DNA of 64,000 nucleotides from Paragordius varius (GCA_964247055.1 OZ176054.1:6138001-6202000); one strand, 5' to 3'. Positions 318-62,851 are shown, counted from the first letter of the stretch. The notes: generated from the sequence alone by a model not told the origin. Numbers and translations: made by a program.

Positions 318-3300
318 ATAACATAAACCCGCAAAATTTGTTGACATATTTGTCTCACATTTACAAAATCATGATGAATCCGGTGAATGGTTTGAAGTTA
401 ACTAGCAACCGTGTTATACTGAAAACATATCCAAACACTATAATCGGTTGATATTTGTTTCATAACACGTTATATACCAATATTAAAAGGCGGGGCGCTT
501 TGAACCGAAACGGGGTCGTTTTTAAACGTTAGAAACCGATCTGACTCTTAAAGGGTGGTTCTAACACAACGGAACCGTTTCGTGCTAAAATTTCAGGAAT
601 CCGGTTTTGTTCTGGTTCGAACGCCTGCTAAAAAGTCCATTAAAATATTTAACCATTTTTTCGGATTATATGTTTGGTAAAAGTTAATTTAACTACCATC
701 GGTATAATTAGCACAAGATTAATTATATTAAAAACTTTTTGGTTAACCAATGCCTCATAAAATATAATCATTTATATTGTTCTTATTTTAAATCAATGCT
801 TATTCTATATTTTTTCAACTTATTAAGAATGTACTATCGAATATTGTTTATAAATTTATTCAAATTTTTTGATTCCAATAAGCCATAATTCACTCTCTAA
901 AATATATTTAATAGGTTCCTCTATTACCAAATGGTTGCACACCTATATCATGAAGAAATACCAATCGGCTAATAATAACCCTGATTTAGCCCCACAAAGT
1001 GGCTCTCAAACCAAAAACAATGTAACTCATTCAGCAGATATTTGTAGAGAACTATCTTTGGCACTTGCAAAAGCATTGTTAGATTTTAATTACATAGAAT
1101 ATGTGTTAGGAGGTGGGAGTTCAGATACTATCATGACGTCTAATATTATTTCAGGGCCTAAATACGCCCCTGTGAAAGGTTTAATCGGTTGTGATTTGGA
1201 TAATGAGCAACCGTTCAAAGAAACTGAAATATATCGACCAGGTTTGGCCTCGGTTAAAGGGAATGCACTACTTAAAGAATCTGCCTTACGATTGTACCTG
1301 CTCAAAAATAGCGTTTTGTTTAGTTTACCACCATTTATTATGGCGCAAGATTATGCAGTAGAACATGGAGAGGATAGTGATGTGTTAGGTATGTAAAACA
1401 CATCAATTTTTAAATATTTAAAGCAGTGATACGTTTCATGCATATTATTTTAATAGATTTTGCATCAAAACCAGTGTCCCCAACACTTAATGATCTAAAA
1501 ATGACATCTGAAGTAGATAATATTCTTACTACTACTACACCTCATCCTCATGAAAACATTACTCAACAACTCCAAGTTAAATTAAACCTGGATTCTAATA
1601 CAACTCAAATATTAAACAAGTTTTTGTTTAATTTTATTTTTTGTTGCGGTGTTGGCTAGTTCACCTTTGATATATTATCAGCCGAGGCTAGTTTGGATGT
1701 TTCGCAAAAAGTATTACAGGAGTCCAAATAAAATTTGTTTTACTTCAAATTATAAAATTTTTAAGTTTTAGCACTGCCACGAAATTTTGTTTTTACAACC
1801 GTATCCAATGTTTTGAGACTGCATGGACATCTTTAAATAAAAAATAAATTAAGGAATCTATTTTAAATATAAAAGGTATTTTTTATATCATTTCCGGTAA
1901 TCGAAAAATAATTTTATTATTTAAATTGAAGTTTCCTTGTTTAATTATAGCATAATTTCGCGAGGTTTTATATCAGATACAATTTTTAATGTATTGTTTT
2001 AAGCTGATTTTAAAGTAATATAATATTTTAATATTTTAAAAATTTTATTAAGTTTAGAAACGGAAGTATTTCCCATAATACAATCTATCATGTTCATCAA
2101 AAATATAGTTTTGTGTAAAGATAGTTATATAGTTTATTGTAGGTATTCCGATTTTTCGCTTCCGGATATATATGAAAATTGATTAACTTTAAATGGCTCG
2201 TAATATTCAAAATTAAACTTACGTAATCATTAAGTCCTACGATAACCATTTAAAATCTGAAAAATTTATAACCAATTCTGTATGAAATATATTTGGTCAC
2301 CCTTGTACCAGAACGATGCTTTTTAACGGGTAAAAATATTTTTTATTTAGAATCATAACTAACGAAATCGATCCCTCAAAATTACTGTTGCCTACAAATG
2401 CTTACACTTCATCGATTGCTCAATTTTTGGATGATTTTTTGTGGGAAGTTATGAGTCAAACCCTACTTTACAATAACATATATGATAATGTTTCATTGAA
2501 ACATACAAATTCTACTCAACAACACAGTAACAATTTAACAGGTGTCCGAAGAAGAGCAATATTAGCCAAATACATTCATGCCTTGAGTCTTTTCGCTTTC
2601 AGTACGTTAAATAAGAATGGAAATGACACAAATGCTGGGCATCCGAATGATACCAGCTGCAATAATAAAAATAATAATAATACACGTTATAAAACCAATT
2701 TTAATGTGATGGAAAACGTTAAAATTAAAATGATTCATCACAAATGTCACAATGATAACGCTTCTTCAATTAATGATTTGACAAAGGTTATTGATGGCGA
2801 AAATCTATATGAGTATTGGTGCAGTGATGGAATAAATCCATTTTTTCATGTTTTCCCAGGGATTGTGTTTAAGCACAACCTTATACATGATTCCATGATA
2901 GCTATGGCTAATACATTACCTAACGCTGTACATGATGATGAAACATTTGATTCTCAATACCCTTTATGGCTTCCAAACTCATGTATAAAAAGGTCGGGTA
3001 CATGCAAACCTCTTTTAAGTTTAAAACACCCAACTATTCTCCTGTTCACGGGCCCAATTGAATACCAAAGGGGCTCTCAACAACAAAAACAACATAAAAA
3101 TGGTGGTGGTCTAAAAGCAGTTGCCGCAACTTCCGTTTTTACTGAACAAAAGAAATTTACATCCCTCGAACCGATTTTGCTTCAAGAACATGAGTATTTA
3201 AGGAATTTTTGTAACAATATTGCACGCCTCAGGCCTGATCTTATATTGGTACAGGGTATGATAAGCTATTTGGCGCGTCAGTGTTTGATTGATTTCAACA

Positions 3301-6300
3301 TACCATTTATATACAATTTGGCAAAATCGACATTGTTACACAAAATCGCCTCCGTAACTGGAGCTACCATAGTCCCAGGTCTAGTTGAAAGTGGTCAATT
3401 GCTTTTAATTAAACCTAGGATGGGAGTTTGTAAAGCATTTCACATCGTTTCTATGGCATCGGGATGTGGTCGCAGTGAAAATAACACTTTTATTTTCATT
3501 GAAATATGCCCATCCATACAACCAATAATACCTATTGTAAAAGATAAATCCACCACATTCGGTCAACAAAGTTTTGTCAATACTCACCCCTACCATTTAG
3601 ATTACATGACTATATTGGTCAATGATTATAACTATTATAAAAAGATTAAATTATTGTTAAAGTTATGCATATATTTGGCACAACATTTAACATGTTTTAA
3701 GGTATTTTTAACCACTCAAATGCATACTCTTAGCATAGAATATGAATTATCAAATGATTTTCTCATAAACCATCCTTTAGTTTCGTACAAATATTTTGTA
3801 GAAGGCCAAGATGAAGATGAAATATTGATCCAAGAAAAAAAATTTATAAATTTGTTGAAACTAAAAGATACCCTTTTGTCCCAGTGTGATGAACCTATCA
3901 AGATTGATAACACGGAATGTATGGAATTAATTCAAAATAAAGTAACGAAAAGTTCCGGAAAACTGTCCCGTTACGAGGCATATCAAGTCTTGTTAAAACA
4001 TATTATCTTGACTTGCAACCCACTTGTAACCTTTAAACCACCATTTTTAGACACGAAATATGAAATCGGCGGTCATTTAACGAAATATTTGCCGAAAAAC
4101 CTTTATTATTCCCCGACGAATTACAATAGTTTTCTTAATAATAAGAAAATGTGTTTGCCGAAAAAACATGTGAAAACTAAATTTTTTGATCCTAAAGAAT
4201 TGTCACCTCATGATTTTATATCCCTGTTTAGATATGATGAAAATTTTTTTAAAGAGTCAATGGACCAAAATAAAAATGATGAACGCCAAGAAAAAAATAC
4301 GGATGAGCCACCGTCTTTTTTTATTGATTCTTTTGCATTTGATCAAGTGCAATTAATGGAAGTCCTTTTTTACAGCTTTGTACCAAACATTCAACAATAT
4401 ATGGGTTATTGTATATCTCCCCGTATTATTCCAATTCATTTTTATGGGCTTCATGATATATCCTTAGGGACGCTTTTAAATCAATTTTGCTTTAATACAT
4501 CATACATTTGTCCCAACAAGCGATGCAAGGCATTGGGGATGGATCATGTTCGAAGATTCGTTCATGATGACACAAGCCTGAATGTAATTATTATTAAAAA
4601 GAAACCAAATAATAATAATGCTACCAATGATACCAATGAAAAAAATTACCAGCATCGTCTCAATACACCTATCGATTATGTCCAATATTGTGGAAAGTGT
4701 GGCATTCTTTTATCATACTCGCCCAATATTGTTGCTAATCTGGGGTCACAACTCTCCATGGGTGCATTTATCCAAAATTTAATTTACAGCAAAGATGATT
4801 TAACTAACATTACATCTCGTTCGTTTCTAACTCATCCTTTGTTTTACGAAAAAAGTTATCACATTTGCAGCAGCGATGTATCCCATAACCCTGATACAAA
4901 TATTCAAAATACCATGAAAATGCCAGAAACATTAAATATCGTTCATTGTTTTAATCAAAATAATAACGTTGCAATGTTTTTACCATGTCCCATTATTTTG
5001 GGTTCGCTAATTTTTCCACCCTACTATATTAAATATCTACAAAGCTCTGAGTATAAACGTATATATTGTGAAGAGATAGAAAAATTCACTGTAGATAACC
5101 ATAACACATTCGATTCCATAATTAAAAAAATTGTAGATTTACAAAACGTATGTTTAAGTAACAACAGTGTAATCGATCCTGTCAGACCAAACTTTGGGAC
5201 CATATTACAAAAAACCAAAGATTATTTGTATGACATAGAAAATGAAAAGACAACTATTAAAAATCTAATAGATCAAGCTCAACTTCAACTTTCACAAAGT
5301 ATTGGTAATGGCAATTTTGATACATCCCAAAAAGATATGATCGATAGTTTCCTTAGCATTGAAAATACCATTAATGAAGGCAAATCACTTTTAACTCAAT
5401 CAGTGTATTTTTGGAACAAACATTTACTGGATCTTCACAACTTACGCACTGAAAAATGGACAGGACGTGTTGAACGATCAGATGCAAATAATAACGACCC
5501 TAAAAAGGTGACTTCGGCTCTTTCCACAATAAGTGGGCAAATTGATTGTAAGTATATAGATAATAAAAAAGTTACTGGAGTCGAAAACATTAATAATGCT
5601 ATTGTATCCACTTTGCCTCCTAACAAAGACAAAGAAATATTTGCCACGAATTTAAAATCAATCATTACGTCTTGGATAAATAATTCGGGATTCGAACCTA
5701 TCATGTGCCCCTATCCACCTACGCAGCATTCCAATCTACCCTATGCGGGACCAAATTTTTGTCGCGTTATTATAACAGATGATAATGCTTGCTCCATTGT
5801 GGCATATTCGTTATCATGTATGGAGTATCAAACAAAGATTAAAGCTACACCAATGACTACCAACTCAGACTGCTCATTTATCAACCTAAATTCGGCTAAT
5901 GAACTCAACTCAGACACAATTTCAGACATCAATGAGAAATATCATATCGAAACAAATTTTTGTGATAATATCACCAACTACAAATTCAATTGTAAAATTT
6001 ATTATGCAGCCGATTTTAAGGCATTTCGTGAAAAAATGTTCCCTGCCGGAGAAATACAATTTTGTCGATCCTTATCAAAAGCTAGCAAATGGATTTCAAC
6101 CGGTGGTAAATCGGGATCAACTTTTTTGCGGACTCATGATGAACGTTTTTTGATTAAACAAATGTCACGGATGGAACTACAGTCATTTTTAACGTTTGCC
6201 CCTCATTACATGCGTTATGTGGAGAATTGTAATGATGAGATAGGATCACAAATTACTTCTCTAGCTAAGATTGTTGGTGCTTACCGGATAAGTTATAAAA

Positions 6301-6977
6301 CTGGCAATTCGACCATCACCACCAAACAAGATGTGTTGGTAATGGAAAATTTGTTTTATGATAGGAAAAACATTCAGACGGTATTTGACCTTAAGGGTTC
6401 ACTCCGAAACCGTCTAGTTGAAATCAAAGAACTTAAGGTGCTTAACAAAGGAGCGAACAGTAGCGGAGAACTTAACAACAATAATGTTAAATCGTCATTG
6501 ACTATCGAAATCGAAAGTGATGCACAAACTTTCAAGCACCAGGAATCAGATAACAGAGGAATGGGTAATCGAACATCAGATGTATCTGTTGTGTTGATGG
6601 ATGAAAACTTTATTCGTTTAACGTTGGATTCACCTCTATACATTAGGCCTCATTCAAAACTTATACTCATGACAGTTTTGGACAGAGATACGGCTTTTTT
6701 GTCTTCACACGAAGTAATGGATTATTCATTATTAGTGGCATGGGATCCAAGTCGTCAAGAGTATATCGTTGGCCTAATTGATTTTATACGTACATTTACG
6801 TGGGACAAAAAGCTTGAAATGATGGTCAAACGTTCAGGTCTACTTGGAGGCCAAGGTAAAATGCCTACTATAGTATCACCCCAATTGTATAGGCAACGCT
6901 TTTTAGAAGCGATGAATCGGTACTTTCTAACCGTCCCTGATCATTGGTATGGATTATCAAAATTTTCAAACATTTAA
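318..6977 (+). CDS. PIKFYVE: 1-phosphatidylinositol 3-phosphate 5-kinase (PIKfyve/Fab1), 5'-partial
   Basis: Exons 318-446 and 915-1388 join in phase 1 to give a DEP domain (LSHIYKIMMNPVNGLKLTSNRVILKTYPNTII/GSSITKWL...ALLDFNYIEYV). A further exon starts at 1457; its junction to the next exon is unresolved. The giant exon 2351-6977 has a CCT/TCP1-like region (LKHPTILLF..PIEYQR, LEPILLQEHEYL, RPDLILV) and the PIP kinase domain (GGKSGSTF, FLIKQ, DLKGSLRNR, MDYSLLV, IDFIRTFTWDKKLE, PTIVSP.LYRQRF). The FYVE exon(s) are not in the window. Confidence 0.96.
488..630. mobile_element. Possible degenerate MITE in a PIKFYVE intron
   Basis: GC-enriched island with repeated AACCG/CGGTT motifs and imperfect inverted ends (ggcggggcgctttgaacc ... 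ggttcgaacgcctgct). No TSD confirmed. Confidence 0.3.
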
Positions 6978-7210: not shown

Positions 7211-10200
7211 TCATTTAACGTATAATTGGGATGATAAACCCTTTTTTAGTTTGCGCACACTGTAAAAAATCGAATTTTTAATGCCTATAATAAAAATATA
7301 AAAATTAACCTGTGCTGAAGAATCCTTTAACCGTTTGTTGTATGCTTGATCTAAATACTATTTTTCTCAAACCTAAATTTAAAATATTGGCTCTCAAATA
7401 ATATACCATTTACAATTCAAATTCACCCTTGAATTCAAATTCACACTAAAAATAAATTATCTGTTTTCGGGATAATATAACTCATCATTGATATGAAATA
7501 TATTTTTACAACATAATTTATTATTTTTTCAGCATTATGTCAATTTTAACCAGAATTTCATATTGAAAATATTATAAAATAAAAGAAAATTTTAATCACA
7601 ATTTATTTTAGGGTGAATTTGTACTGTAAATGGTATATATAAATTAAAATATTAAAACAAAACATACATTTATTTATGGCATCCTCTAAGTGAACCCATT
7701 TTGACATAACATTGAAACATTCTTCTTGATCATACATTCTTTTATTAGTATCTATAAATTCTCTATAAAAATTTATAATTTTTGAATTTCATAAAATTAT
7801 TTTAAAATAAAATATTATTAAATACTTGTGGAGTAATGAAGCCAAGTTGGATGGTAAATGCATTAAATGATGAAATATTGCGTCCGGGCTTAAATCTTGC
7901 TTAAAAAATATTACATGACATAATTAAAATTTGCTAGAATTTATGCTAGAGTATATGAAAAAAATATTAAAAACGCCTTTAAATTGTTTTAATTAAGGAC
8001 AGTATATTCCAGTATAATAAGCTCTATATGGGAAAAATAGTATGAGACTACAGACTATTTCGGAAGTTAAATATATAGTTTCAGGTTTTTATAATAGGTT
8101 TCCAAATTATAACGATTAATTATGAAAATAATTACCAGCAGGAGCTAATTAGTTTTAGCGGCTTGAAAATAATAAAACTAAAAAGGTAAAATAATAATAT
8201 TTTATAACTATAATAACCGAAAACCAACATTTTATATAATATCGAATTGCCATATATTATGTGGGAAAATAATGGGCGTATTTGTTCAAATATATATTAT
8301 GTTTATATTTTTAACCAGAAGGGCGGAAAGTATAAATAATAAGAATACAAAAGTAATTAGTAGATGAAAAAAATAAGCCTAAAAAATTCCGAAAAGATAG
8401 ATCTGAATCTAAATAACTCTATTTAAATTAAGGACATATTGAATTTTATTTTGTGAAAATTGTATATGTCCTTAACTTTGTAAAAAAATCAAATTTCATA
8501 TATCATTAAAAATGAATAAAAGTTTTAGGTAATAAAAAATAATCTTCGATAAAACTAAAAAAGTAATACTTTTAATATATTCTACCTCAAATTCTTCCAT
8601 CGCATCATTAAAGTGTAAAAATGGCTTAAAATACTCTTTAATCAAAGGAGTGTAGAGATCTAAAAATGCTTGTTTTTGCTTTTGAACAATATTTGGTATT
8701 TTGTTGACATCTTCAGCAAAGTACATCCGAAAGTCACCTAACGTAGGATAAAAACGAACAAATCAGTAAAATGAAATTTTAATGGTAAAAATGAAAATAT
8801 TATTTTGTTAGAGATATAATGAAGTATTACTTTATTTTTGCTTTCTGTGAAATTTTAATTATAAAAAATATTTTATAATTATATAATACACCAATTTTTT
8901 TTATTAATTTATATTTTTCTGTCATACATTCTGTCCAAAATATAAAACTCAAACTAATCAGATATTTTTATACATAAAAATTTTTCGTTTGCGAAACATT
9001 TCATTTTCATTCCAAGTCCGTCCATAAAATTTCATTTTAATTTTTTTGTATGTTTCTATTTACTTCAAACAGTGACCATTGCTAAAGTTTATACGTTTTA
9101 TTAAGGTTGTTTACCTATTGTATTAAGCTGCCTAGAAGTGACATTTATGGGTTAATTTTATTTAGAATAATGGTGTTTGAAATTTTGTCGGTCCATTTTA
9201 TTTGGAGAAGTTTCCTCCAAACCCATAATTCGAAAGAATTTATTTGACGTTCGTCATATTTACAGTGTCCAGCTTTCCCCCCATATATGAATGTGGGAAA
9301 AACTGTGGCCTTGATTATTCTGATTTTGGTTTGTATTTTAATGTCATGCGACAAAATCCTGTTATATTTAAAAGTTACTGCTTTAGCAATAGCAATTCTT
9401 CGCTATATTTCTGGCGTAGAGTTATTCTCTCTAATAATAATGCTACCTAAGTACGTGTAGCTGCTAACTGTTTCGATTTGGTTGCCGTTGAGAATTATTG
9501 GATTGGTTTGAGCCGGATTTATTTGCATGACTTTTGTTTTTTTGAAATTGATATTTAATCCAAATTTATTGCATTCCGTTGTAAACACTTGCAAGGGTTG
9601 GGATAATGTGTCTACGCTGTCTGCGAATAAGACTGTATCATCGGCGTAGTGAACGGATGTAAGTAGGTTTCCACCTACATTAATGCCATAAGCTTGTGGG
9701 ATGTTTCTTATTATGCACTCCAGGTATGCGTTAAAAAGAATTGGGGATAAAACGCATCCTTGATGGAGGCCGACTTGTATCTTACATGAGTCAGATATAC
9801 CGTGAGGTGTAGATATTACAGCCGTGGAATTTAAGTAAATTGAGAATATGACGTTGATTAGATATGTGACACTCCAGGTTGTTTTAGAGCTTTCCGTAGT
9901 TTATTGTGCTGGATGGAATCAAATGCTTTGGAAAAATCGACAAAGCACATATGCAATTCTTTGTTAAATTCGATGTGTTTCTCGATTATCCACCTCATAT
10001 TACATATCATATCTCGGCATCCTCTACCTTTTCGAAAGCCAGCCTGAATCGTGGATATCTCGGGGTCAAGAATGGTATTTAGTCGAAACTGTATTATTTT
10101 TAGGAAAACTTTGGACACCTGGTTTATGAGCGCTATGGTGCGATAGTTGTCGCACAGTTCTGGATTACCCTTTTTTAAAATCGGAATCATAATGGATGTG

Positions 10201-13200
10201 CACCAATCCTCAGGAATTTTTTTCTATCTCAAATATGGTTTGAAAAAATTTAGTAAGTATATCGATTGGAATATATTTTATTATTTCAGTAGGGATGTCT
10301 CTGTGATTTCAGTAGGGATGTCTCTGTGGCCCTCTGATTTGCCGGTGCTAGAGTGTTTTATCGCGAGTTCCACTTCTTCTTTTAGGTGGTTCTTTTTGTT
10401 GAGTAAGTTCGTTAATAGTCGGTCGGTTATTTACATTGTATAGTTTACTTATGTGTTTATGCCATAGTTTGCGAATTTCGTCTTTTTCAGTGACGATTGA
10501 GTTGTTATCGTTTCTCATAGGTCTCTTGTAAAAAACTTTTTTGTGTGGAATAATATTGTTTGCATGGGCAAAAAGGTTTCGGTTATTATGGCGTCTATAT
10601 AGTTGGTCATAATACTTATTTTTGTTCTCTCTTGCACTCTTCTGAAATTCACTGTTTAGTTGTTTGTATGCATCCCATTTGCATTTGATTTTGGATTCTC
10701 TACGTTTTTCTGCGATCTCAAAACTTTTGGTTAACAATTTTATTTTTTGTTTAGTACGTTTGAAAGGCTGAATAAATTCGTCGGCTGTGTCTCTGCAGAT
10801 TGTGTGTATAGCGTTCCAAAAGGAGTTTATATCCTGATAGTTTTCGGAATTATGATCAAGACAGTCGAAACTTGATAAAGCGGTGCTAAACTTGTCGTCG
10901 ATTGTATCATAATCTAATCTTGTTCTGGTGGGTTTGGATATTTTAGGAAGTTGTAATTTAATGCAGAGTTTGGCGATCAATAGGATGTGGTCGCTGTAGC
11001 AATCCGATCCTGGTAGGCATTTGACATTATGAAATGAACTTTTGTATTTCCCCATACCTAATATGAAGTCAATTTGGTTACGGTATCTTTGACACGGGGA
11101 ACGCCATGTGTATAGACGTCGTTTGGGCTGTTTAAAAAAGGTGTTGGCGTCGAAGAAACGATGGTTAGCACAAAATTCAATCAATCTGTCTCCTCTCTCG
11201 TTTTTATGCCGAAGCCATGCCGCCCGTCATATGAGGTGTCTTGTCTCTTGCGATGATTGAGTTGAAGTCGCCTAAGATAAATATGATATCCTTTTTTGAG
11301 ATTTGGGAAATCGCCAAGTCGAGATCGCTATAAAATTTTTCACAGTCGTCATCGCTGTAAGAGGAGGTAGGTGCGTAAATTTGGAGGATAGTAATGGGTT
11401 GAGGGGTTGTTTGTATGCGGATTGCAATTATACGTTCATTAATTGGATTAAAAATGTCCGATAAGTTAGCTAGTTTTTTGTTCATTATTATGCCGACACC
11501 GTTGTATTTTAACGAGTCGTGGCCGGAATAATACAAACTATGATTGTCAAATTCTAAAGTTCCGGTAGAGGGAATGTGTGATTCTGAAATTCCTAGCATG
11601 CCAATTTTATGCTTAGTGATTTCGTTAACGACAATATCTAGTTTGTGATTGAAGTAGGCTCCACGTAAGTTCCACGTGGCGATACGGATGCTGAGATTAC
11701 ATGATTTCAACATTAGCAGAATGTGATTAGAATGGGAGAATGTGAATAGGAAATATGTTATGGCTATGTAAGGAATAGAATCTAACTATTTCTAATTTTC
11801 GGAGAAGGTATAAAATAAAAATATGGAAATTTATTTAAAACGTATCATAGAATAAATAAAATTCGAACGGTTTCGGACATTTTAACGTGTGTCCGTCCTC
11901 AGCATAAAAAAAAATATAAAAATTAGGATGGATAAAATGGTGCTTTATATACAATTTTTAAAAACGTTTATTGTTGTTTCTTTTCTCGTAACAAATGATA
12001 AGTTAAAACCATTTGTCATTGTTTAAAGCAATTTGACATTGGTGTGGGGTTTAAACCAGGTCTTAAATTAAAAACTTTTTTATCAAATAATAATAAATCC
12101 AAATTAAATTATCCAGGGGTGTATAAAGTTCCATGCGAGTGTGGCAGGGTATATATCGGCCAAACCGCAAGGAAAGTTAAAACACGCCTGAATGAACACA
12201 AGTATAACATAAAGAATGGAGATTTTAAGAGTTGTATTGCGGAACATTGTTGGAAGGAAAATCATAATGTTTCCTTTGACAATGTCAGTTGCATTACAAT
12301 TTTCAATAATAATCAAAGGCTTACGCGGGAATCATTAGAGATTCTCAAAGGAAACAACTTTAACCGAGAGGAGGGACAAAAGATGAGTGATATATGGAAA
12401 GTCATTCTTGATGATTGAATCCATATGGACTCTTTTGTTTTCCACTCAAAGTTGTTCTTTGTGTTTTTTTTTTTAGTATATGTTTATAAATTTAATTGTT
12501 TGTTGACATGGTTTAAACCACTCTCAATGACAAATGGTTTTAACTTATCATTTGTTACGAGAAAAGAAACAACAATAAACGTTTTTAAAAATTGTATATA
12601 AAGCACCATTTTATCCATCCTAATTTTTATATTTTTTTTATGCTGAGGACGGACACACGTTAAAATGTCCGAAACCGTTCGAATTTTATTTATTCTATGA
12701 TACGTTTTAAATAAATTTCCATATTTTTATACTATTCACGTGTCGAAAATAATTTATATTCTTCAAGGTATAAAATGTTTTTGGTAAAAAAGATCGATAA
12801 GAGATGGGTAGATATACCGTACCTTTCATTATTCTAAATAAAATTAACCCAGAAATTTCACTTCTAGGCAGCTTGATACGGCAAAAACTCTCCTTTTTCG
12901 GGCACATTATGAGAGCCAACTCACTTGAAAAATCACTGATGCTGGGAAAAGTGAGTGGTGTTGAAAAAAGAGGGAGAAGACGAACTCGTTGGATGGATAA
13001 CATCCTCAAAGAAACCAACCAATCATTATCCGAACTAAACACCAGATCCGGAAATCGCAGTGAATGGAGAAGCTAAATTTTCAATGTTGCAGTGAGTCGG
13101 AATCGACCTTAGCAACAACAACCTATTGTAAGATATAATAAAAATAGAATCTCGATTTTATGCCAAAAGCCAAAAACAATTTTTATGGCGAGCGAGCGAT

Positions 13201-15768
13201 TTCAAAAAAATAGGGCAACCGCCGCTAGAGCTTCAAAAAATATTTTAAATAATCAACCAAATATAGGAAAAAAAGCGTAAAAGAGCGTGGCCGCCGATAA
13301 TAGCAGACGCTAACAAATGCATAGTGAGAAACGTGTTTTACTAATCAAAATTATGTCAACTCTCCAGCAAATATGATGACTAGCTTAGAAAGTATATTTT
13401 ATTTGGCAAATTTGGTACTCTGCTCATGCAATACATATTCCTTATCTATATCAAACGTCTTTGTGATATCGACACAACTATGTATAGAGCATGTTTGTGA
13501 CAACGAATTTTCTTAAACACATGATTAATGAAAAAATAGCTTATTGTCCCTCCTAGTCTCGGTCAACCTACAAACATAATGCAAATTAACATCAGTCACA
13601 TTTTAGCGATATATAAAGTCTTATTAACCCTATTTACTAGTGCACTACCCCAAGTGGCAAAATCAATTTTAGATTGCATAAATATCACTAGCGATTATAT
13701 AAGCATATGTTCCCCAATCAGTGGAAAATTAAGACCAATCATGGTGGATGTATTAATAGACTAAAATAAAATATGTACCTATTCTGCAAGTTCGTGTCTG
13801 GTAATAGAAGAAGACGGAGATGCGACAAAACTTAATATAAAATAAACCATAATTAGTTTAAAAATTGAGCATATTTAGAGGTTATATGTAGTCTAATAGT
13901 CCATAAGCACTGGACAGTGTAAAAGAATTGACTTTTTTAAAAAATGTAAGAACTTATGCGAATAAGATGGACATAACATCGACCGGTCAATAGATAAGTA
14001 TTATGTGATTACTAGAAGATTTTAGGATGATCATCAAAAATTTATAATCCAGCTTACGATTCGTGAAGATACCGGGTGGTAATGGAATGCGTTTAAACTT
14101 CATTTATAAAAGGTCTTTAGCAGGCTTCGATATCTCCTAAAATGGACTCTAAAAGTTATGGAGTTTTTACATATATATTCTTTTAGTTATTGTTCTATGC
14201 GGACGAATTATATATAATAACAGATTTTAAAGATTGCTTTAAGCCATTTGATAACATGAAACCGAATCGAAATCTGTTAATTTGATTTAACTATGGCATA
14301 TAGAGCACGACTTGTGTAAGCTGAGCTAAAATTTTTGTGAATTTGGTTATTTCGTTTGTCAAATCAGGAAGTGCGCGTGTTTCTACTCAAACAAAACACG
14401 GAAAATCTCATCGTTGGCGGTATTATTGTTTAGCTCTCGACCAAATTTTACAAAAGCTGAAACTAAATTTTTTAAGCCCTAAGAATCCAATGTACCTTAG
14501 TTTGTATGACCCCATTCCCCAAGGCATACCCGCAAGGCTCAGTTATTTGTTAGGCGGTATTACTGAGGAGGTCTTTCGAAACAAAATCCATTTTGAAGTA
14601 ACGATACACAAATTAACAGCTAAGAGAGATATGCTGTCATTAGCGTTAGCAATATCATCGTCTGGCTTGAATGCGATGGTTCGCCAATAACGCTATAATG
14701 AAACAAACCTCCTAGACCAAACCAGTGCATATAAAAAGATGTGACAATCGATGCGCATATTTTTGTAGCGTTTGTCGGTTTGAGTGAGACAAAGCAGGAA
14801 TCGGTCAAGAATTGAAATTAGGGAACCGTTAGAGTCAAATAACAAAAATACTGGACTATGAGAAGCTACGGCAGTACTTTGAAAACTAACATGTTATTAA
14901 TCTTTCTAAATCTGTTTTTTTGCCTAGCAACGCATATTGATGTAGCATTGATATAGAATCTTTAGGGCCCCCCTGTTTTAAAGCGTGTAAAAGCGTAGAA
15001 AACAAGTAACGGTCATGCTCTATAGGGAGTAGCGATTACAAACCTGTTATGCACTTTTCTAGTTACCAGGATAGGTGTTAATATCTTCCTATCATTTTTT
15101 ACATTCATATTAAAAATAAAACGTTATGCTTACGTAAACCGTTTAAATGACTTATACAGTTAGCTGTTAAATATATCATACCTTTGTAAGATAAACTTGA
15201 TATCGTTAGAAACAAAGAAGAAGCGGAAAATTTATATGGTAATAACAGTAAGGAACAATGTATAGCAGATTTTAAATTCATTTTTTGGGCATTTTTCAAT
15301 ACTAAATTCGTTTGAGGTATAGGGTAAACATCTAAAATCTTAAAATTAATAATAAAAACTGGTTTATGCAAACGCCCCGCTACATAAAGAAATTTCCAGT
15401 TGTTCAAATCTTCTAAAAGTTTATTTTCCGATATCACACCATATTTAATTAACTTTGTAATTTAAAAAATAAACTTCATTCTCTATAGGTATATATGTTT
15501 TATATGTTATGCCAGACGCATAGTTTTGATAATATTGTTGAAATTCGGTCGGTAACACGTTAAAGTAACTGTAATGACCGGGATTAAGAATTTTATTTGT
15601 TGAATGCCATTGACTTGCATTTTTGGTCACAAAAATTAGATCTATCATCTAAATGCTTAAAAATTAATAAACTTTATTGCGTGCATTTCTAATAGCCGAA
15701 CCATATGAAAAAACCCAAACATTTTCTTTTGGAAAATGATTTACGATCCGTCGAAGAAGCTCCAACAT
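7211..15768 (-). CDS. TAMM41: Mitochondrial phosphatidate cytidylyltransferase (Tam41/Mmp37), about 325 aa
   Basis: Exons (minus) 15768-15673, 15648-15475, 15452-15360, 15338-15182, 8737-8586, 7899-7826, 7762-7668, 7372-7310, 7284-7211, all GT-AG and phase-consistent. Motifs: FSYGS, MIDLIF, LIKYGVIS..LLEDLNNWKFLYVAGRLHKP, NLKSAIHCSLLLLP, LSYKGDFRM..AEDVNKIPNIV, SSIQQTVKGFFSTGIKNSIFYS. Confidence 0.95.
7285..7309 (-). other. 25-nt spliceosomal intron (TAMM41)
   Basis: gttaatttttatatttttattatag. Its removal restores KGFFST-G-IKNSIFYS; length is not a multiple of 3. Confidence 0.9.
7404..7635. mobile_element. TA-flanked MITE (Tc1/mariner-type ends), copy 1
   Basis: TIR taccatttaca ... tgtaaatggta plus subterminal aattcacccta/tagggtgaattt. 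A second copy lies at 25220-25466. Confidence 0.7.
10283..10328. repeat. 23-bp perfect tandem duplication inside the RTE
   Basis: atttcagtagggatgtctctgtg x2. Confidence 0.9.
11817..12764 (+). mobile_element. 5'-truncated Penelope-like element (GIY-YIG) with inverted pseudo-LTRs
   Basis: ORF 12044-12418 PGVYKVPCECGRVYIGQTARKVKTRLNEH...IAEH...RESLEI is a PLE-type GIY-YIG domain. Inverted repeat arms of about 207 bp at 11815-12021 and 12525-12730. 12-bp direct repeat aaggtataaaat at 11805-11816 and 12765-12776. Confidence 0.9.
12643..12680 (+). ncRNA. Minimal hammerhead ribozyme motif in the PLE pLTR (mirror copy on minus strand at 11865-11902)
   Basis: CTGAGGA-c-GGAC-(12-nt loop)-GTCC-GAAA-ccgttc. 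Core boxes and stem II are intact; stem III is reduced to AAC-C-GTT and stem I is weak. Confidence 0.65.
15339..15359 (-). other. Candidate 21-nt in-frame intron (TAMM41)
   Basis: gtttttattattaattttaag immediately after RLHKP. It is GT-AG with intron-like composition, but stop-free and 3n, so not forced by frame. Confidence 0.65.
15453..15474 (-). other. 22-nt spliceosomal intron (TAMM41)
   Basis: gtttattttttaaattacaaag is the only GT-AG pair I found that joins ...PIENE to LIKYGVIS; non-3n. Confidence 0.92.
15649..15672 (-). other. 24-nt spliceosomal intron (TAMM41)
   Basis: gtttattaatttttaagcatttag contains an in-frame TAA; it joins ...SYGSAIRNARNK to MIDLIF. Confidence 0.9.
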
Positions 15769-15850
15769 CAATATAAAGCAAAACCATGTGGGAAAATTTA
15801 AATGTATATTAATACATTCATAAAATATTTTTGAATTTTACAACTTTGCC
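15769..15850. promoter_or_regulatory. Putative bidirectional promoter between TAMM41 and UCHL5 (82 bp ATG to ATG)
   Basis: Divergent start codons at 15768 (-) and 15851 (+), with a central imperfect palindrome aatgtatattaatacatt. Confidence 0.6.
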
Positions 15851-18050
15851 ATGGGTACTGAAACTGGGAAATGGTGTTTGATTGAAAGTGATCCAGGGGT
15901 ATTTACAGATCTTATTCGTGGTTATGGTATAGTTTAAAATTAATATTAGGTGTAAAAGGGGTCCAAGTCGAAGAACTTTGGAGCCTTGATGAAGATAGTT
16001 TTGACAAATTAAAGTACATTTTTATACAATTTAGACCTATTTTTGGATTAATCTTTTTATTTAAATGGAAACCTGAAATGAAAACCGATACTCAAATGGA
16101 AACTGTCGATAAAATATATTTTGCCAAACAGGTTAAAATTATACATAACATAAGGTAGTAGATAATGCATGTGCCACTCAAGCCATTTTAAATATATTGT
16201 TAAATTGTTCGTCAAATGACATTGATTTGGGGGAAACTTTGACAAATTTCAAGAGTTTTAGTGAAAACTTTTTACCTTCGGTAACTTTGATTTTAACCAG
16301 CACATGTAGCTTAAAGGTGTTTGTTTGACAAATTGCGATACAATAAGGAATGTCCATAATAGCTTTTCGAGGTAAGTGTAAATTGTAATTTAATGTTTTA
16401 AAAATAGTTTTTTAATATGTTCGTCTCATATAGTTTTTTTTGTTAAAAAACCGTATATTAAAATATTAAATATATTTTTAAACATAATGGAATGGCTAAT
16501 TTCCGTAATTTTAAAGGTATGGCAAAAATATTTTGCCTAAAAACTAAAGGATTTTAATAACTTGGTCCATTTTTTAGTTTAAATAGCTGTAAATTTCTCA
16601 AACTATTATTTTTGCATCCACTGGGTAAAATAATCGGTTCCACATGTGTTGTGAGATTTATTCATAGCATTATCTAATATTTTTTCCGCTAAAATATTTT
16701 CTATTCTTTGACTCTATATTGTTTTTGATGGGACGTCGTCTCCTAGATAAACGAAACTTAGATTAAACCGACCAATCATTTGTACAAAGATCTAAGGCGC
16801 ATAAAAATATGTATATCTTGCGCTATTTTTTTGTTAAAAATTTGATGTAATACACAATATAAAAAGATGGGAATAAAACTCTTAAACCGTTACATTTACT
16901 CTATTGAGCTACATTTAATAACATTAATCGGTTGTTCTTAAATATAAAACGGTTTATTAAATTATTAAAACAAATAGGATTTTTTAAGTGCGTTTTGTAT
17001 GCAGGCATCAAATTTTTGAAATGGATGATAAATTGTCGGAAGAAAAAGATGATGTATTCCATTTCACCTCATACATTCCATTTGATGGGCACATTTATGA
17101 GCTTGACGGTCTTAAAAATACCCCTCATCTTTTAGGTTGTTTTTATTAATTACATCATTATTATATATTTCTTTATTTTACATTTCTGTGTATGATCTTT
17201 ATAATTTAGGAAAGATAGAACCAAACGAGGATTGGATTAAAAAAATTCGCCCTATTATTGAAGAACGGATGAACAAGTAACTACTTTTTATAGACATATT
17301 TTCAATTTCTTTTTTTCTATTTTTTTGAAACTCAAGATACAGCAATAGCGAAATACATTTCAATTTAATGGCTATCGTTCCCGATTTAAAGCGTAAATAT
17401 GAAAAAGAATTGGAGGAATTAAAAACTTGCCATAATGTAATAATTATTTTTGATAATATATCAATTCATTTATTTAATATTTGATATAATTGGAAATAAA
17501 TAAATTTACTTAATTTTGTTCAATATACTTTTTAGTATAATTTTAAAAACAGACGTTTTAGCCATGGTATTGTAGTTATATATCTATTTTTAAATATAAA
17601 AGTTAGTTTGACTATTATGGTGTAAATTAAAAATTCCTTTAATAAAACTTTCAATAATTTTAAAGATTTAGGCATCAATAAATTGATCTTATATTATAAT
17701 TTTCATCCAATTTTTTCCGCTATTTAATTATATTTTAGGATATGGAAACTGATGAGAATCAAGCTCATATAACTCATCTCCAAATGCTCATTGCAGAAGA
17801 AAATGAAAAAATGCAAAGATATCAGGTACAAAAAATTTTATAAAGCTTTTAAAAATTTTAAATATAAAATATTTTTTATTTCATTTGTTAATTCAACTAA
17901 AACGAACTTATATAATATTAGATTGAAAATCAGCGACGAAAACATAATTACATACCATTTATAATGGAGTATTTGAAGATTTTGGGTATGGAAGGCAAAC
18001 TTGGTCCAATTACTAAGGCTGTTGCCAAATATATCTCCCAAAAATCATAA
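15851..18050 (+). CDS. UCHL5: Ubiquitin carboxyl-terminal hydrolase isozyme L5 (UCH37), about 312 aa
   Basis: Exons 15851-15926, 15950-16013, 16035-16131, 16155-16280, 16310-16371, 17005-17135, 17210-17276, 17337-17436, 17739-17825, 17922-18050 are phase-consistent. Motifs: [91 protein letters not shown]. Catalytic Q/C/H/D are present. Confidence 0.97.
15927..15949 (+). other. 23-nt spliceosomal intron (UCHL5)
   Basis: gtatagtttaaaattaatattag; non-3n; restores [14 protein letters not shown]. Confidence 0.9.
16014..16034 (+). other. 21-nt intron (UCHL5), in-frame and stop-free
   Basis: gtacatttttatacaatttag. Removal gives [15 protein letters not shown] as in UCH37 homologues; retention would insert 7 aa. 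Confidence 0.8.
16132..16154 (+). other. 23-nt spliceosomal intron (UCHL5)
   Basis: gttaaaattatacataacataag; non-3n; restores [14 protein letters not shown] around the catalytic Cys. Confidence 0.93.
16281..16309 (+). other. 29-nt spliceosomal intron (UCHL5)
   Basis: gtaactttgattttaaccagcacatgtag; non-3n. Use of the nearer AG (20 nt) would lead to CAC ATG TAG stop. Confidence 0.88.
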
Positions 18051-20088
18051 ACTTCCTTCCACACAAAATTCTATTATAATTATTATACTATTTTTTTAAA
18101 AAATAATTTAGATATGCTCTTTAAACAAAAGTCACAATGGCAATTTACAGCGGAGATGTATAGTCTAATATATAGCAATTATATTTTGTCTTGATTAAAA
18201 CAAACATAGGTTATTAAATATTCGCGAATTTCATAAATTGTTGGACAAGCGGTGGAAAAAAATAGCTACGCTGGTTGCATTGAAAAAAATGTCATATCAA
18301 TGCTAATTCATTTAATTTTTTCTGGTTGTTGCATTTAAAATTGGAAGATTTACCCAGATTCTACAATTTAAAAAAATTAAGAATCAAAATTTATTAAAAA
18401 AATTTAGTCTAGTTATCTACGGTTTTCGTCTAAATTTTGGTGGATTATTAAATAGCTATAAAAAGATAATTTATACCATAAAGAATCCTTAGTTTATACG
18501 AAAATTTATTTAAGGTAAAATATGATATATATATAATTTATCAACCTTAAAACATAACTAGGAATAAATCTGAATAAATATTGATATTAAAAAATAAAAG
18601 TCATTTGTTTTTGTATGATTTATTAGATACTTGATTTTTTATAACTGAAAAATGTTGTATTTGGAATTTTTTCGAATTTTTTGCGGGTGGCAAAAACATT
18701 TTTAAGAGATGCATGGGGCTCGTAGAGCGTTTGAACACCCTTGCTTTAGATGAATATATTGTAATATTTTTTATAGTTATTTGATACTTTAAATAAAATA
18801 GTTGGCTAAAGCGGTATAACCTTATTGCAGTCAAGCCAAAGTAAAAAATCTAGCGATCATCATTGAACAAAAGTGAAATACAGAAGGGATAGTGAGCTTT
18901 AGATGAACAGTCGGTGTTTCCATTTAAATAATAGTAAATTGTGATTAAAAGAAATCGCTCCTGTTATGTTCTCATGAATAATTATTTTTATACTATATTC
19001 CGAAAAATCAATTTGAATGGAACGATTAATATAGAAAGTGTTTTTATATTTTAAGGCGTTTACAAACGTTTCCACTATAGTACACTTTAACAAAATTTTT
19101 CCAAAATTAAATAATCAAAGTATGCGTTATTTGAAAAAAACTTTTTGGATGATATTTTCTATCATGTATTAATTATATATTGTGCAACCTCATTTTTTCG
19201 TTTATTTTGCAAAACTAGCCTATTTTATGGGGCTCCAGAAATTTGAGTCCTTCGAAGCTACCTATATTATATTTGATATAAATTTGATTTTGCATTTTAA
19301 ATATAGCTTTTGATATATTTTCATGATTTTAGCTTGAAAAGCATAATATGCGCTAATGCCATTTTCCATATGCAGCATTTACCACAAAAGTGCGTATGAT
19401 TTTCTTAAAATACTCGTAAGCTCCGAAAGCAAAAGCACCATGATAATCCTGTTACTTTTATAATTCCTCAGGAGGATATTTCCTTATTTTCCTGGTTTTG
19501 TGCGCTATGTAATTATATCTAAGCAATCGTTCAAAAATTATTCTAATAATTAAGGGCCATGAAATGCTTTTAGGCCCGCGGTTATAGTATCATTGCATTG
19601 CATGAGTCACATCATAATTAAAATATATCTTTGAAATGTATGGAGGAAATAATTCAAAATTGCCATTCCTTTGTCTGGCTGATGCAGGTAATAATATTAA
19701 ACAGCAAAATTAACGAGTTGTTCGTGTAGGCGAAATCTTAACTCCAACCAAAAAACCAAAAATACGAAAATTTTACTAACCGATGTGAACTAAAAATATT
19801 GGTAGGCAGGATTATAATAATGGATAAGGTAAAATGGTTTATTTGTGTCATTTAATAATTCTAATTAATTCACCATGTTTAATAATTTATGAAAAAGGTG
19901 TTGAATAATCCTTATAGTTTTTGTTCTAATAAGCTCCGCAGTATAGTTGGATCCAAAAATGCAGTATGTGAGGCAATGAAAATGCAAAAAAACACTATAA
20001 AAACCCGTTTCAAGTGTTATGATTTAATTTAAATCCAATTTTACCCTCCACTATTTTAAAAACTTTTTACAGAAATGTTTCAGTTATT

Positions 20089-20274: not shown

Positions 20275-21773
20275 TTTATCTATTCAAATATAGCGCTTAA
20301 TAGGAAATTATAACCAAACATACAACCATTTCAATTTATAATAGAAGCGGAAAGAGATGTAATTTGTCGATTGTTTGATGTTTAAGAGATTTGATATAAT
20401 TTTTGTTGGATATTGTTTAATATTAATTTATATAAATGCTTTATAGTGACAAAGGGCTAAACTTATAATTTAACGAAATTGGATAATTGTTCCAACCCAT
20501 GTTTAAGTGCAAACAGAACTTCCGAAAGTTGATGAACACACAACCTTGCAGACAATATTTGTTCATTTTAAACCGATGTATTTATTCTTGACAAAAACCG
20601 ATTTCTAAACACATACAAATAAAAGAGGTTTTAAGGAAATTCCTTTATTAATGTCCGTTTATTTATACCAGTAATATATTTTGTTTTTCAAAATATAATC
20701 TGTTTAATTTTCTCGCATGTTAAAACAAATTGACTTTATAAAATATACTTTGAATATTCTAATAGTACCTATTTGGGTTCATATTTACATTAAAAAAAAA
20801 TTTTACCCACCTCAGGACATTTTAGTATATATGAAAAAAAAACATTTCCTTTACAGAGATATAACAGTAAAATTACTACAAAAAATATTTTTTACGCTAT
20901 TTATTTCACACAAACAAAATTGAATGTAAAAATTTTCATCCATTCATTGACTTTTGTTGACGTTAATGCATTTTTGACAAGGAATGATGAGTTATGTCTT
21001 TTTTAAGTTACATGGATTTCGTCCAAAAACATAATTTTTATTTTTTTCTCTGTTCTAACCTTTTTCAAAACATTAGTTTTGGTATACACATGATCATTTC
21101 TAAAAATATATTTTTTTTAACTTTAATTAATGAATTATTAATGTACGTAATTATGATATTCCAGCCATAAATATTTCAAATTGGCATGTTTAAACTATCC
21201 TATATTGTTGATCATTCCCATATATATATATATATATATACATATTTATTTAATGTGCAAAAAAATGCAAATTTGCGCAATGATTAGTGATTATTAATCA
21301 ATTTTCACAAAAAAATTATTTTATTTTAAAATATTGTTAATATTTGGCAAGGACAGTTAAATAATCTCCCATATGTTAGCATTTAAATTGAAATATTTAA
21401 CGCTAATTTCTATTTAATCGCTTGTTGTTGGTTATCGGTTTATAATTTATTGATATCGGTCACACAAAGTTGGAAAAAAACATTTATTACCAACGCTATC
21501 GATATCATTGTTAAAAAGTTCAAGTTCAAGATTGTGTTGTATTACATTCCAGTACCAATTTTTTTATAGCCTCTTTATATACATATATCGTTTCGATCCA
21601 TAAAAATAGATCTAACGATTGTAATCGAGAATATATATTTATATCTACTTACCATATACATTGCGCTTTTAACTTAATATCCCAATTTGTTATATATATA
21701 TATATATATATCGTGGACAAAAGAATTATTTCTTTGGTGCAAAATTTTATTATATACCATCCATTCTTTTGTA

Positions 21774-24168
21774 ATGCCTATCTTAGCCCGTCGCAAATCT
21801 TCAATTCCAGGGGGTCAGCATGGATTTCACAGTGGTGAAATTGGTCCGGTCGAAGAGGCCGGGGACAGTACATTCGATTACAGCAAAGAAGATGAGTATG
21901 AAAGCACGGCTTTAAAACATACCTGGATAGTGGGTTTGTGTTCGGGTTTAGGCAAATATTTAACGGCTGAAAATTTTGGTCACAAAATTAATATGACGGG
22001 TATAGCTATGAGAAAAAAACAGCAGTGGACCCTGATCCCTGAGTTTCGAGATGGTGTCTTTGCAAAACATGAATATTCCCCACAAACACAAACTCAAACG
22101 ATGACAACCGCTGCGAGTGATACAAAAAGCGGGGAAAATGCACATGGTTATTATCCTATCGTTTACATAAGATCGCCAGTTAATCGATTTTTGACCTTAG
22201 ATAAATTTGGAAATGTGACTTGTGAAACCGAAAAAATGGGTGAAAGTCAAAGATTTGCCTTAATTAATACGGATGACATTTTCCCAACCACGGGTGAGAA
22301 AGAAAATAAACATGGTAATGCATCTCAAACCTGGGGTCCTTGCCTTATTTATAATATAAAACATGCATATTTTCTATCCTCTCATTGTGTTGATAATGGA
22401 CTCCAAGGTTTCAACAAACCTGACACGGCTCGGGCAGGTGATTTTTGGAGCTGTCATTTACATATACATCCACCTCATATAAATATCATGCATGTGCATA
22501 GACAAAAATTTATAAGATATTTGAGGGATATGGATTGTGTTAATTTGTTAGATAGTGGTTTACCTTGGGGTCTTGAGGCCTTATTCACGATCGACAGAGT
22601 ACCCTATTATAGTGAAAATGTAATAACAACACATTCATCAAAAGAAGTTTCGTTAAAACCGTCGAACCAACAATCCCCGAATTCACTGCAACAAAATCGC
22701 AAAGGATCCAGTCCTAAAATAAGTGGGGCCCATCTAATAATCCCAATTAATAGTGAACCTTTACCTACCCGGTATTGTATTCGAACTTCGAATGGGAGTT
22801 TAGTTACTTCTACTGGGAAATGCATAAAACCTAAAACAACATCATCATCATCATCATTGAATGTGTTAAACAAAAATGGTATTAATAATATTCCAACAAA
22901 TGCTCTCTTTACCATACACTTTTCCCAAGGTTATTTAGCCTTCAAAGATGACACGGGTAAATATTTAACATCTATCGGCAATGAAGGCCATGTGAAATGC
23001 AAAAAATCAACTCTAGAGAAAGAAGAATTATGGACTATTGTTGGAACTAAACCCCAAATAAACTTAAAAGGATGGAATGATAAATATGTAACGACCCAAA
23101 AAGGTACAAATTTATTTTAAACACTTATTATACAGTAAAAATTATAATTAAAAACATAAACACACATTTTTAAAAGACAGCCATACTTGTTGAAACGTCT
23201 ATATTTTTTACATAAACTATTTAGACACAAATTTAAAATATGCATTGTGTGTGTGTGTTATTAATTATGAATATACAGCAATTCCTTTATCTGGAATTGT
23301 AAACGTTAAGTTATTCAAAAAAACAAATTTAAATGGTTGCCTTTTCATATAAAAATCTTGTCTTTATAATTTACGTTTTATCTAAATTTCAATTTTTACT
23401 ATAATAAAATTTTTTGTGATTTTTATGATTGATTTACTTATTGATTCTGAAAAGGTATGGACATATCAGTAAATCAAGATGAAATCACAAACTTTGAGAC
23501 ATTCCAATTGGAAAATGACGACAATGGTAAATATTGGCGGTTTAAAACAGTGGCAGACAAGTTTTGGGGATTAGGAGAAAACAATGCAATCCATTGTATG
23601 GATGATAGGTATAATAATTAACTAATTACATGCATGTTAGATAATGGTCGTGTGTTTTACCCCCTAATGTTTAATTTTTATAAACATAATTTGTTTAATC
23701 ATAAAAATTTCATCAAATAATATACCCTATTTCAAATCGATTTTTTTGTCCATTTATATATAATTTATAAGGGTTAAAGCTACCCGCATTTTCCACAAAA
23801 GTTTAAAACTGTAAAATTTTGATATAATGCATGCGATCCTTTTAAATTATCTTTATTTTCCTTAACTGCTAAAAAGTTTATAAAATTATATATAAACTCT
23901 GTTTTGAAACTGAAATGCTATTAATAGTGTCAAATAACATTTTTATAGAATGGATGCGCATGTATGGTTAAAGCACAGATAAGATAATTTTAATGGCATA
24001 AAAGCATATTAATACATTAATCGGTGATATTTTATGCATTAATACTAATTAATTTTTTGATCTGTAGTTCCAGCATACTAATCGCTAAACTTCGTTCCAT
24101 GACACTCGATACCAAGTTTTAATATTTATTAATCAATATAACCTAATTGACTTTATATCCCCACCAAT

Positions 24169-24221
<53 letters not shown>

Positions 24222-61986: not shown

Positions 61987-62851
61987 ATGGACGCAAACAA
62001 ACCTCAACTTACTGCGTACGCATATTCATCCGGTTCAGACAACGAATATCAAAGCGATGAGGAAACAGAAACTATCAAAAGTAAAAGTGAATCTAGTGAT
62101 GATGTTGAAAAACAGAACAGCCAAAACGATGAAGATAGTAAAATTGAGGATAATATGGATTATGAAAATGATGATTCTAGCTTCAAAAATATATCTGGTA
62201 AAATAATTAATTATAATTATTTAGATTCAGAAAATGGAGATGATTTACTTACTGAATTAGTTGATGCCACTAGTGAAATTATGACTGAACCTGATAAAAA
62301 CGAAATAAATTCCGGACCATTTATATTTTGGGATAATGCAGGTCCAGTATGGTCACTCGCCTCTTCTCTTAAAAAATTAGCAAAGGAAAATGCTTTTTCT
62401 TTGGAAGGTATTAATTATATTTTAAGTATTTTAAGAGAAGAATATATTAACTAAATTACCCAAAACTAAAAGGTTATGTTCAGATGTATTGCAAGAAAAG
62501 TTTCGACATTTATACGATTTAAAACAAAAGGAACATTCAAAGTATTTACTATTAAAACACTCTTAGTTTGATTGCCTACTATATTCATTTTTTTGCAGCG
62601 AACAACAAAAAGATTTTAATTCCATGATAACTGATAATAAAGCATTTCGCAATCCCAGCATTTATGAAAAACTCTTACAGTATTGTGACATTGACGATAG
62701 TGGTACAAATTGTCCACCCACCACTGATTTTATTGTTAATTCCAGTTATAATACTAACTTTGACAATGAATCAGCTTCGGAAGATCCTAATTCACCGACA
62801 TCCAGAAATTCTCAAATTAAAAAATTGGGTATTAATCATTTTTTGACATGA
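61987..62851 (+). CDS. SAP30BP: SAP30-binding protein (HCNGP family)
   Basis: Exons 61987-62197, 62225-62407, 62436-62541, 62599-62851 are phase-consistent. Acidic N-terminus (AYSSGSDNE), then LCSDVLQEKFRHLYDLK and the HCNGP core AFRNPSIYEKLLQYCDIDDSGTN. Confidence 0.88.
62198..62224 (+). other. Candidate 27-nt in-frame intron (SAP30BP)
   Basis: gtaaaataattaattataattatttag; intron-like composition but stop-free and 3n. Confidence 0.65.
62408..62435 (+). other. 28-nt spliceosomal intron (SAP30BP)
   Basis: gtattaattatattttaagtattttaag; non-3n; needed to reach LPKTKRLCSDVLQEK. Confidence 0.85.

Follow-up and report, generated by a model that had tools for sequence, protein, structure and literature searches.

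We analysed a 64,000-nucleotide (nt) window of AT-rich genomic DNA (OZ176054.1:6138001-6202000; 25-36% G+C), in which all coordinates below are counted. The window carries the 3' part of PIKfyve (plus strand, large exon 2334-6974), TAMM41 (minus strand), UCHL5 (plus strand), a fascin-like gene, a tandem-domain tyrosine phosphatase (PTP) gene and SAP30BP, also called HCNGP (plus strand). Ten segments of 21-29 nt in three housekeeping genes, UCHL5, TAMM41 and SAP30BP, here called micro-introns, all have GT at the start and AG at the end, and we conclude, with a probability of roughly 85%, that they are genuine U2-type spliceosomal introns that shrank in place.

Seven of the ten segments (22-29 nt) are obligatory, being forced by the reading frame or by an in-frame stop, and unless they are removed no intact protein collinear with its family can be obtained. 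At the local base composition, a required deletion is calculated to carry GT...AG ends by chance in ~0.3% of placements; all seven forced cases carry them, and coincidence is therefore excluded. The remaining three (21, 21 and 27 nt) are multiples of three in length, in frame and free of stops, and are treated as candidates. A preliminary description of this DNA had listed forced introns of 25, 22 and 24 nt in TAMM41 and of 23, 23 and 29 nt in UCHL5, two further 21-nt in-frame candidates, and a forced 28-nt and a possible 27-nt intron in SAP30BP, and every one of these was recovered at that size (Table 1). Its view that they are real GT-AG introns of an animal genome is likewise favored by family collinearity, positions shared with a vertebrate, indel-free DNA runs and variants of a non-coding kind. 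Micro-introns make up 7 to 10 of the ~21 introns counted in the three genes of this single window, and none was found in its PIKfyve part or its PTP gene. The same genes thus contain two classes of intron, one of 21-29 nt and an ordinary one ranging from 57 nt to 6.4 kb. The short class is clustered, with UCHL5 introns 1-4 and TAMM41 introns 1-2 (3 with the candidate) adjacent to one another toward the 5' end; the exception is the last intron of TAMM41, which is also a micro-intron.

The gene models agree closely with the respective protein families. For TAMM41, the boundaries of long introns were selected from all frame-compatible GT/AG pairs according to their score against a hidden Markov model (HMM) of 60 animal TAMM41 proteins, which had been gathered using exon 3. 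The resulting protein scores 322 bits against this HMM, and its full-length identity to insect TAMM41 is 37-40%. Exon pieces match positions 1-26, 36-93, 95-173, 175-212 and 282-306 of the Pfam family Tam41_Mmp37, the pieces at 36-93, 95-173 and 175-212 following directly on one another. Removal of the 25-nt last intron links ...KGFFST-G to IKNSIFYSVRKLKKG. Exon pieces of UCHL5 match positions 1-16, 44-84, 85-125 and 152-189 of the Pfam profile Peptidase_C12, and the exons flanking segment 16132-16154 adjoin to the residue on that profile (44-84, then 85-125). In the alignment with human UCHL5 (PDB chains), the boundary between exons 3 and 4 falls between residues 82 and 83 (matches 28-82 and 83-121), while the 21-nt candidate, translated as YIFIQFR, falls on an exact seven-residue gap. 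Successive exons of SAP30BP match HCNGP profile positions 4-27, 26-65 and 71-93.

Table 1. Gene models and introns of TAMM41, UCHL5 and SAP30BP in the window, with the corresponding introns of a presumed bird TAMM41
Feature	Positions	Strand	Description	Bird TAMM41 counterpart
TAMM41 gene	15768-7211	-	332-aa open frame	
TAMM41 exons	15768-15673, 15648-15475, 15452-15182, 8737-8586, 7899-7826, 7762-7668, 7372-7310, 7284-7211	-	gene model	
TAMM41 micro-intron 1	15672-15649	-	24 nt, multiple of three; forced by in-frame TAA; variant 15658 inside	intron 1, 1233 nt; 2 codons away, in a gapped alignment region
TAMM41 micro-intron 2	15474-15453	-	22 nt; frame-forced	intron 2, 850 nt, phase 0; identical column and phase
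TAMM41 candidate micro-intron	15359-15339	-	21 nt, in frame, stop-free	intron 3, 2772 nt, phase 0, after conserved K-P; identical column and phase
TAMM41 intron 3	15181-8738	-	6444 nt, phase 1; packed with transposon remains	intron 4, 2255 nt, phase 1; identical column and phase
TAMM41 686-nt intron		-	686 nt	intron 5, 2115 nt, phase 0; identical column and phase
TAMM41 63-nt intron		-	63 nt	
TAMM41 ~295-nt intron		-	~295 nt	intron 6, 2102 nt, phase 1; identical column and phase
TAMM41 last intron	7309-7285	-	25 nt; frame-forced; phase 1 in Gly codon; TAA directly after donor	
UCHL5 gene	15851-18048	+	10 exons, 312 aa; spliced coding sequence 939 nt, no internal stop	
UCHL5 exons	15851-15926, 15950-16013, 16035-16131, 16155-16280, 16310-16371, 17005-17135, 17210-17276, 17337-17436, 17739-17825, 17922-18048	+	gene model	
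UCHL5 micro-intron 1	15927-15949	+	23 nt, GTATAG...ATTAG; frame-forced; variant 15943 inside	
UCHL5 micro-intron 2 (candidate)	16014-16034	+	21 nt, in frame, stop-free; variants 16024 and 16027 inside	
UCHL5 micro-intron 3	16132-16154	+	23 nt; frame-forced	
UCHL5 micro-intron 4	16281-16309	+	29 nt; frame-forced	
UCHL5 first ordinary intron	16372-17004	+	633 nt, donor GTAAGT	
UCHL5 other ordinary introns	17136-17209, 17277-17336, 17437-17738, 17826-17921	+	74, 60, 302 and 96 nt	
SAP30BP (HCNGP) gene, 5' part	61987-63667	+	spliced frame open; may extend beyond the window end	
SAP30BP candidate micro-intron	62198-62224	+	27 nt, in frame, stop-free	
SAP30BP micro-intron	62408-62435	+	28 nt; frame-forced, joining acidic first exon to HCNGP frame	
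SAP30BP ordinary introns	62542-62598, 62829-63549	+	57 and 721 nt	

We compared intron positions in TAMM41 with those of a vertebrate ortholog (locus L007 of assembly GCA_013399735.1, which we take to be a bird from the pattern of its accession), whose exons were mapped and whose junctions were refined to GT/AG, giving six introns. Five of the six coincide with window introns in both alignment column and phase. Because positions and phases are held in common, the micro-introns look like ancestral introns shrunk in place, and on this alignment at least some of them occupy ancestral intron positions. The bird DNA carries G|GTAAGA at the site homologous to the phase-1 position of the 25-nt intron, and from that point onward the annotated bird protein (P0268; tail at L007 12470-12541) loses homology to the family; the C-terminal tail of P0268 is probably a read-through of a real consensus donor into an intron, which would make the public model mis-annotated. 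A homolog search for TAMM41 returned insects only, with an intronless gene in Gryllus, and two marine matches were cDNA-like, so that these were uninformative on intron positions. A metagenomic eukaryote has only the long-intron position in common with the window gene: on a eukaryotic contig from a JGI metagenome (L004 6001-6965), TAMM41 is present as two called genes separated by a gap of ~62 nt, and the first stops at the conserved SY-G, where the window gene has its 6.4-kb intron.

Contigs covering 15000-18600 were available from four separately assembled DNA runs, which represent at most three samples and two species labels. Throughout exons and micro-introns these contigs differ by substitutions only; all seven indels fall in the ordinary introns of UCHL5 (16372-17921), and none of the contigs jumps across a micro-intron. 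Two of them (X2 and X3) span 15000-16440 or more, and a third (X4), which carries the second species label, covers 15889-16216 without gaps. The five runs that hold the stretch behave as DNA, with introns evenly covered and no splice joints. Presence in the DNA of several samples is thus directly established, as are the sequence itself, the frames, the homology, the conserved positions and the variant pattern. When 39 substitutions from the DNA runs were sorted by gene model, variants occurred at 9 of 1478 exon bases (0.6%; six synonymous, three conservative), 4 of 142 micro-intron bases (2.8%; two in the UCHL5 21-nt segment) and 23 of 1347 long-intron bases (1.7%). Variant density is therefore ~4.6 times higher in micro-introns than in exons (Fisher one-sided p = 0.02) and ~3 times lower in exons than in long introns: purifying selection acts on the exons, and variation in the micro-introns resembles that of non-coding DNA.

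The class has ~85% A+T, GT[A/T] at the start and [A/T]AG at the end, features that together with the conserved positions argue for ordinary U2-type splicing by intron definition. The micro-introns would be removed from pre-mRNA in this way by means of a branch A ~13-18 nt from the 5' end, with no true polypyrimidine tract, a model already put forward for introns of Myxozoa and dicyemids. By eye, an AA or TAA lies 13-18 nt from the 5' end in most of the ten and a pyrimidine tract is lacking; this spacing fits a branch point whose distance to the 5' splice site is constant, although it is only a hint. A scan of the whole window with Rfam returned no small nuclear RNA gene and no other family. 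The spliceosome adapted to introns of ~22 nt that the preliminary description put forward would be a conjecture at present. As for their origin, ancestral introns were probably shortened where they stood, the long members of the ordinary class being inflated by transposons.

Several other processes could in principle produce small segments that interrupt a frame. Seven frame disruptions in three genes, with no transcript aligned, might suggest decaying pseudogenes or non-functional duplicates bearing small frame-breaking insertions, with functional copies elsewhere. Yet each disruption is bounded by GT...AG, its removal gives perfect collinearity, no further stops or frameshifts occur in the 312 aa of UCHL5 and the 332 aa of TAMM41, exon variants are depleted and mostly synonymous, and several disruptions occupy the positions of ancestral introns, all of which makes decay very improbable. 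Assembly or sequencing indels are a natural suspicion in AT-rich, low-complexity and error-prone DNA, but errors would not yield GT...AG ends ten times, and with every micro-intron recovered at equal length from four DNA runs assembled apart, we consider the chance of false frameshifts close to nil. These two outcomes, assembly indels and pseudogenes, had been named in the preliminary description as fatal to its reading; the first is contradicted by the DNA runs and the second by the variant pattern. Programmed elimination at the DNA level, as of ciliate internal eliminated sequences, or translational bypass would accord with the sizes, which resemble those ciliate elements or small introns, and none of the RNA-labelled runs gave an alignment that would tell these routes from splicing. 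The ends, however, are GT...AG rather than TA...TA, the segments are kept in the contigs of all four DNA runs, and their positions coincide with spliceosomal introns of the vertebrate ortholog, so that such a route is scarcely credible here. We know of no animal precedent for eliminating or bypassing segments of this kind.

A narrower alternative accepts the frame-forced segments as introns and takes the three stop-free segments with lengths divisible by three as coding insertions or as alternatively retained. All three are open in frame, the TAMM41 insert starts V-F-I-I, resembling the family consensus V-K-I-L, and the SAP30BP segment is situated in an unconserved acidic region. On the other side, the UCHL5 segment corresponds to the exact gap against human UCHL5 and contains two variants within 21 nt, and the TAMM41 segment begins precisely where a conserved phase-0 intron lies. 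We consider this alternative unlikely, though deserving of far more weight than those above.

A number of observations weigh against shrunken spliceosomal introns as the explanation, or against its extension to a lineage. The three stop-free segments are translatable, including or omitting the 21-nt candidate leaves the TAMM41 HMM score unchanged (322.4 bits), and the SAP30BP candidate has nothing that supports intron status. The branch-point pattern is not significant, being indistinguishable from composition with ten introns at 85% A+T. Four RNA-labelled runs bearing the same species label yielded no alignment to 15000-18600, even with likeness lowered to 85%, and among the indexed RNA runs none holds the stretch; splicing, together with the handling of such short introns by the spliceosome, is consequently something we infer from sequence. 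The grouping with nematomorphs described below comes from one gene, PIKfyve, in a comparison in which both sequences are long-branched and the set contained no nematode, priapulid or tardigrade. Finally, the shortest annotated intron of PIKfyve in the nematomorph Gordionus is 41 nt (GT-AG), so that the trait may not extend across Nematomorpha.

The surroundings of these introns are far from compact, as the 6444-nt intron with remains of a long interspersed element (LINE) shares TAMM41 with introns of 22-25 nt, and the DNA runs assemble to 150-520 Mb of contigs. The LINE, a decayed retrotransposon lacking long terminal repeats, occupies 9148-11785 on the minus strand of TAMM41 intron 3 and is split across several frames, with Pfam matches to RVT_1 and Exo_endo_phos fragments at 9406-11785. 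The same intron contains inverted arms (11795-12021 and 12525-12750; complementarity 100% over the inner 115 nt and 92% over the outer 119 nt) around an intact 138-codon open reading frame at 12002-12415, in which a GIY-YIG-like motif is visible by eye; no Pfam match was obtained for it at E<=0.001. TAMM41 and UCHL5 lie head to head, their start codons (15768, minus strand, and 15851, plus strand) 82 bp apart with one variant (15847) in the spacer, a spacing that implies a putative bidirectional promoter of very small size in a region otherwise rich in repeats. Elsewhere in the window, the fascin-like gene (21678-26325) is highly divergent, matching only four database proteins at E<=1e-5 with 22-28% identity, all mollusc or unnamed, and these weak matches provided no usable second marker for taxonomy.

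The affinity of the genome was assessed from PIKfyve. The best match of its kinase region is Gordionus sp. (Nematomorpha) at 412 bits, followed by a nemertean at 351 bits, and maximum-likelihood analysis places the window and Gordionus sequences as sisters with 100/100 support and 60% identity over 346 columns, compared with 52% or less against other proteins (BLASTP). Over the large exon, the window gene (335-6974) and its Gordionus counterpart (L001 10001-31094) are 34% identical and differ in intron content: an intron present in Gordionus (at its residues 782|783) has no equivalent in the window, whose exon continues there without a break, and an exon end at about residue 405/406 is common to both. 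The Gordionus locus (PIKfyve isoform X1) showed no synteny with TAMM41 or UCHL5. Published nematomorph genomes measure 200-300 Mb and are reported to show 'rampant loss of universal metazoan genes', that of Gordionus having 27% G+C, 64% repeats and a BUSCO completeness of 71.6%. The AT-rich, transposon-bearing window fits this picture, and we consider it probable that the genome belongs to a nematomorph or a related ecdysozoan. The nematomorph genome papers that we consulted do not mention introns.

To our knowledge, introns shorter than 30 nt were long held to be impossible in animals. The present data raise the possibility, which we advance tentatively and at less than even odds, that a discrete class of 21-29 nt spliceosomal introns, derived by shrinkage in place, exists in a third lineage of animals, probably Nematomorpha, and that this is the first such case in a large, transposon-rich genome that keeps kilobase-long introns in the same genes. 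Under that proposal, part of the low BUSCO completeness of Gordionus and of the reported gene loss would be an annotation artefact. Gene finders and BUSCO-type tools usually bar introns this short, and many conserved genes would consequently be broken or missed; a minimum intron length of 30-60 nt in an aligner or gene finder would disrupt genes of this kind, a point relevant to claims of gene loss in the phylum. If true, extreme intron shortening would not need genome compaction, and one spliceosome would cope with a ~300-fold range of intron size in a single transcript.

Among unicellular eukaryotes and relict nuclei, Paramecium has introns of ~25 nt and chlorarachniophyte nucleomorphs have introns of 18-21 nt; practically all introns in these systems are tiny, and those with lengths divisible by three tend to carry stops. 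The window resembles them in size range, AT-richness and GT-AG ends and differs in that three of its four such introns (four of ten in all) are stop-free, a sample too small to judge. Even shorter introns, of 15-16 nt, are known from Stentor (PMC13644364). Within animals, a survey of 51 genomes (September 2026) found introns below 30 bp in no animals other than myxobolid Myxozoa and Dicyema japonicum, with reduced GTa...AG motifs and A residues before AG, and tied them to parasitism and genome reduction; Henneguya, Thelohanellus and Myxobolus have median introns of 22-27 bp (PMC13644364). Further animals with ultra-short introns were predicted in that survey, which mentions neither nematomorphs nor flatworms (PMC13644364). 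The preliminary description had named dicyemids among the known tiny-intron lineages and had omitted the myxobolids, the animal record holders (PMC13644364). Like those of Myxozoa and Dicyema, the introns described here are GT-AG introns below 30 nt at conserved positions in parasitic hosts, with reduced splice motifs (GTa...AG) and, as far as can be judged by eye, A residues upstream of AG and no polypyrimidine tract. In Myxozoa and Dicyema, however, the tiny class is the genome median, genomes are compact (Henneguya, ~75 Mb) and splicing has been seen in long RNA reads, whereas here the class is known from DNA, stands beside transposon-holding introns of 0.3-6.4 kb and belongs to a different lineage, PIKfyve grouping with Gordionus.

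Flatworms provide the closest parallel in architecture. Microintrons of Opisthorchis, Clonorchis, Schistosoma, Echinococcus and Macrostomum form a class defined as below 75 nt and peaking at 37 nt (flatworm length peaks lie at 37 and 90 nt), and are adjacent to one another, 5'-biased, placed beside introns of ~3 kb and missed by default annotation settings (PMC6530080). The window similarly shows a clustered, 5'-biased short class next to kilobase-long introns in a repeat-rich genome, but its introns are 21-29 nt, the last intron of TAMM41 is also a micro-intron, and its PIKfyve does not group with lophotrochozoans, placing it in another phylum. The preliminary description had considered short introns in an expanded, transposon-rich genome unusual; the combination as such already exists in flatworms (PMC6530080), and the novelty lies in lengths below 30 nt and in the lineage.

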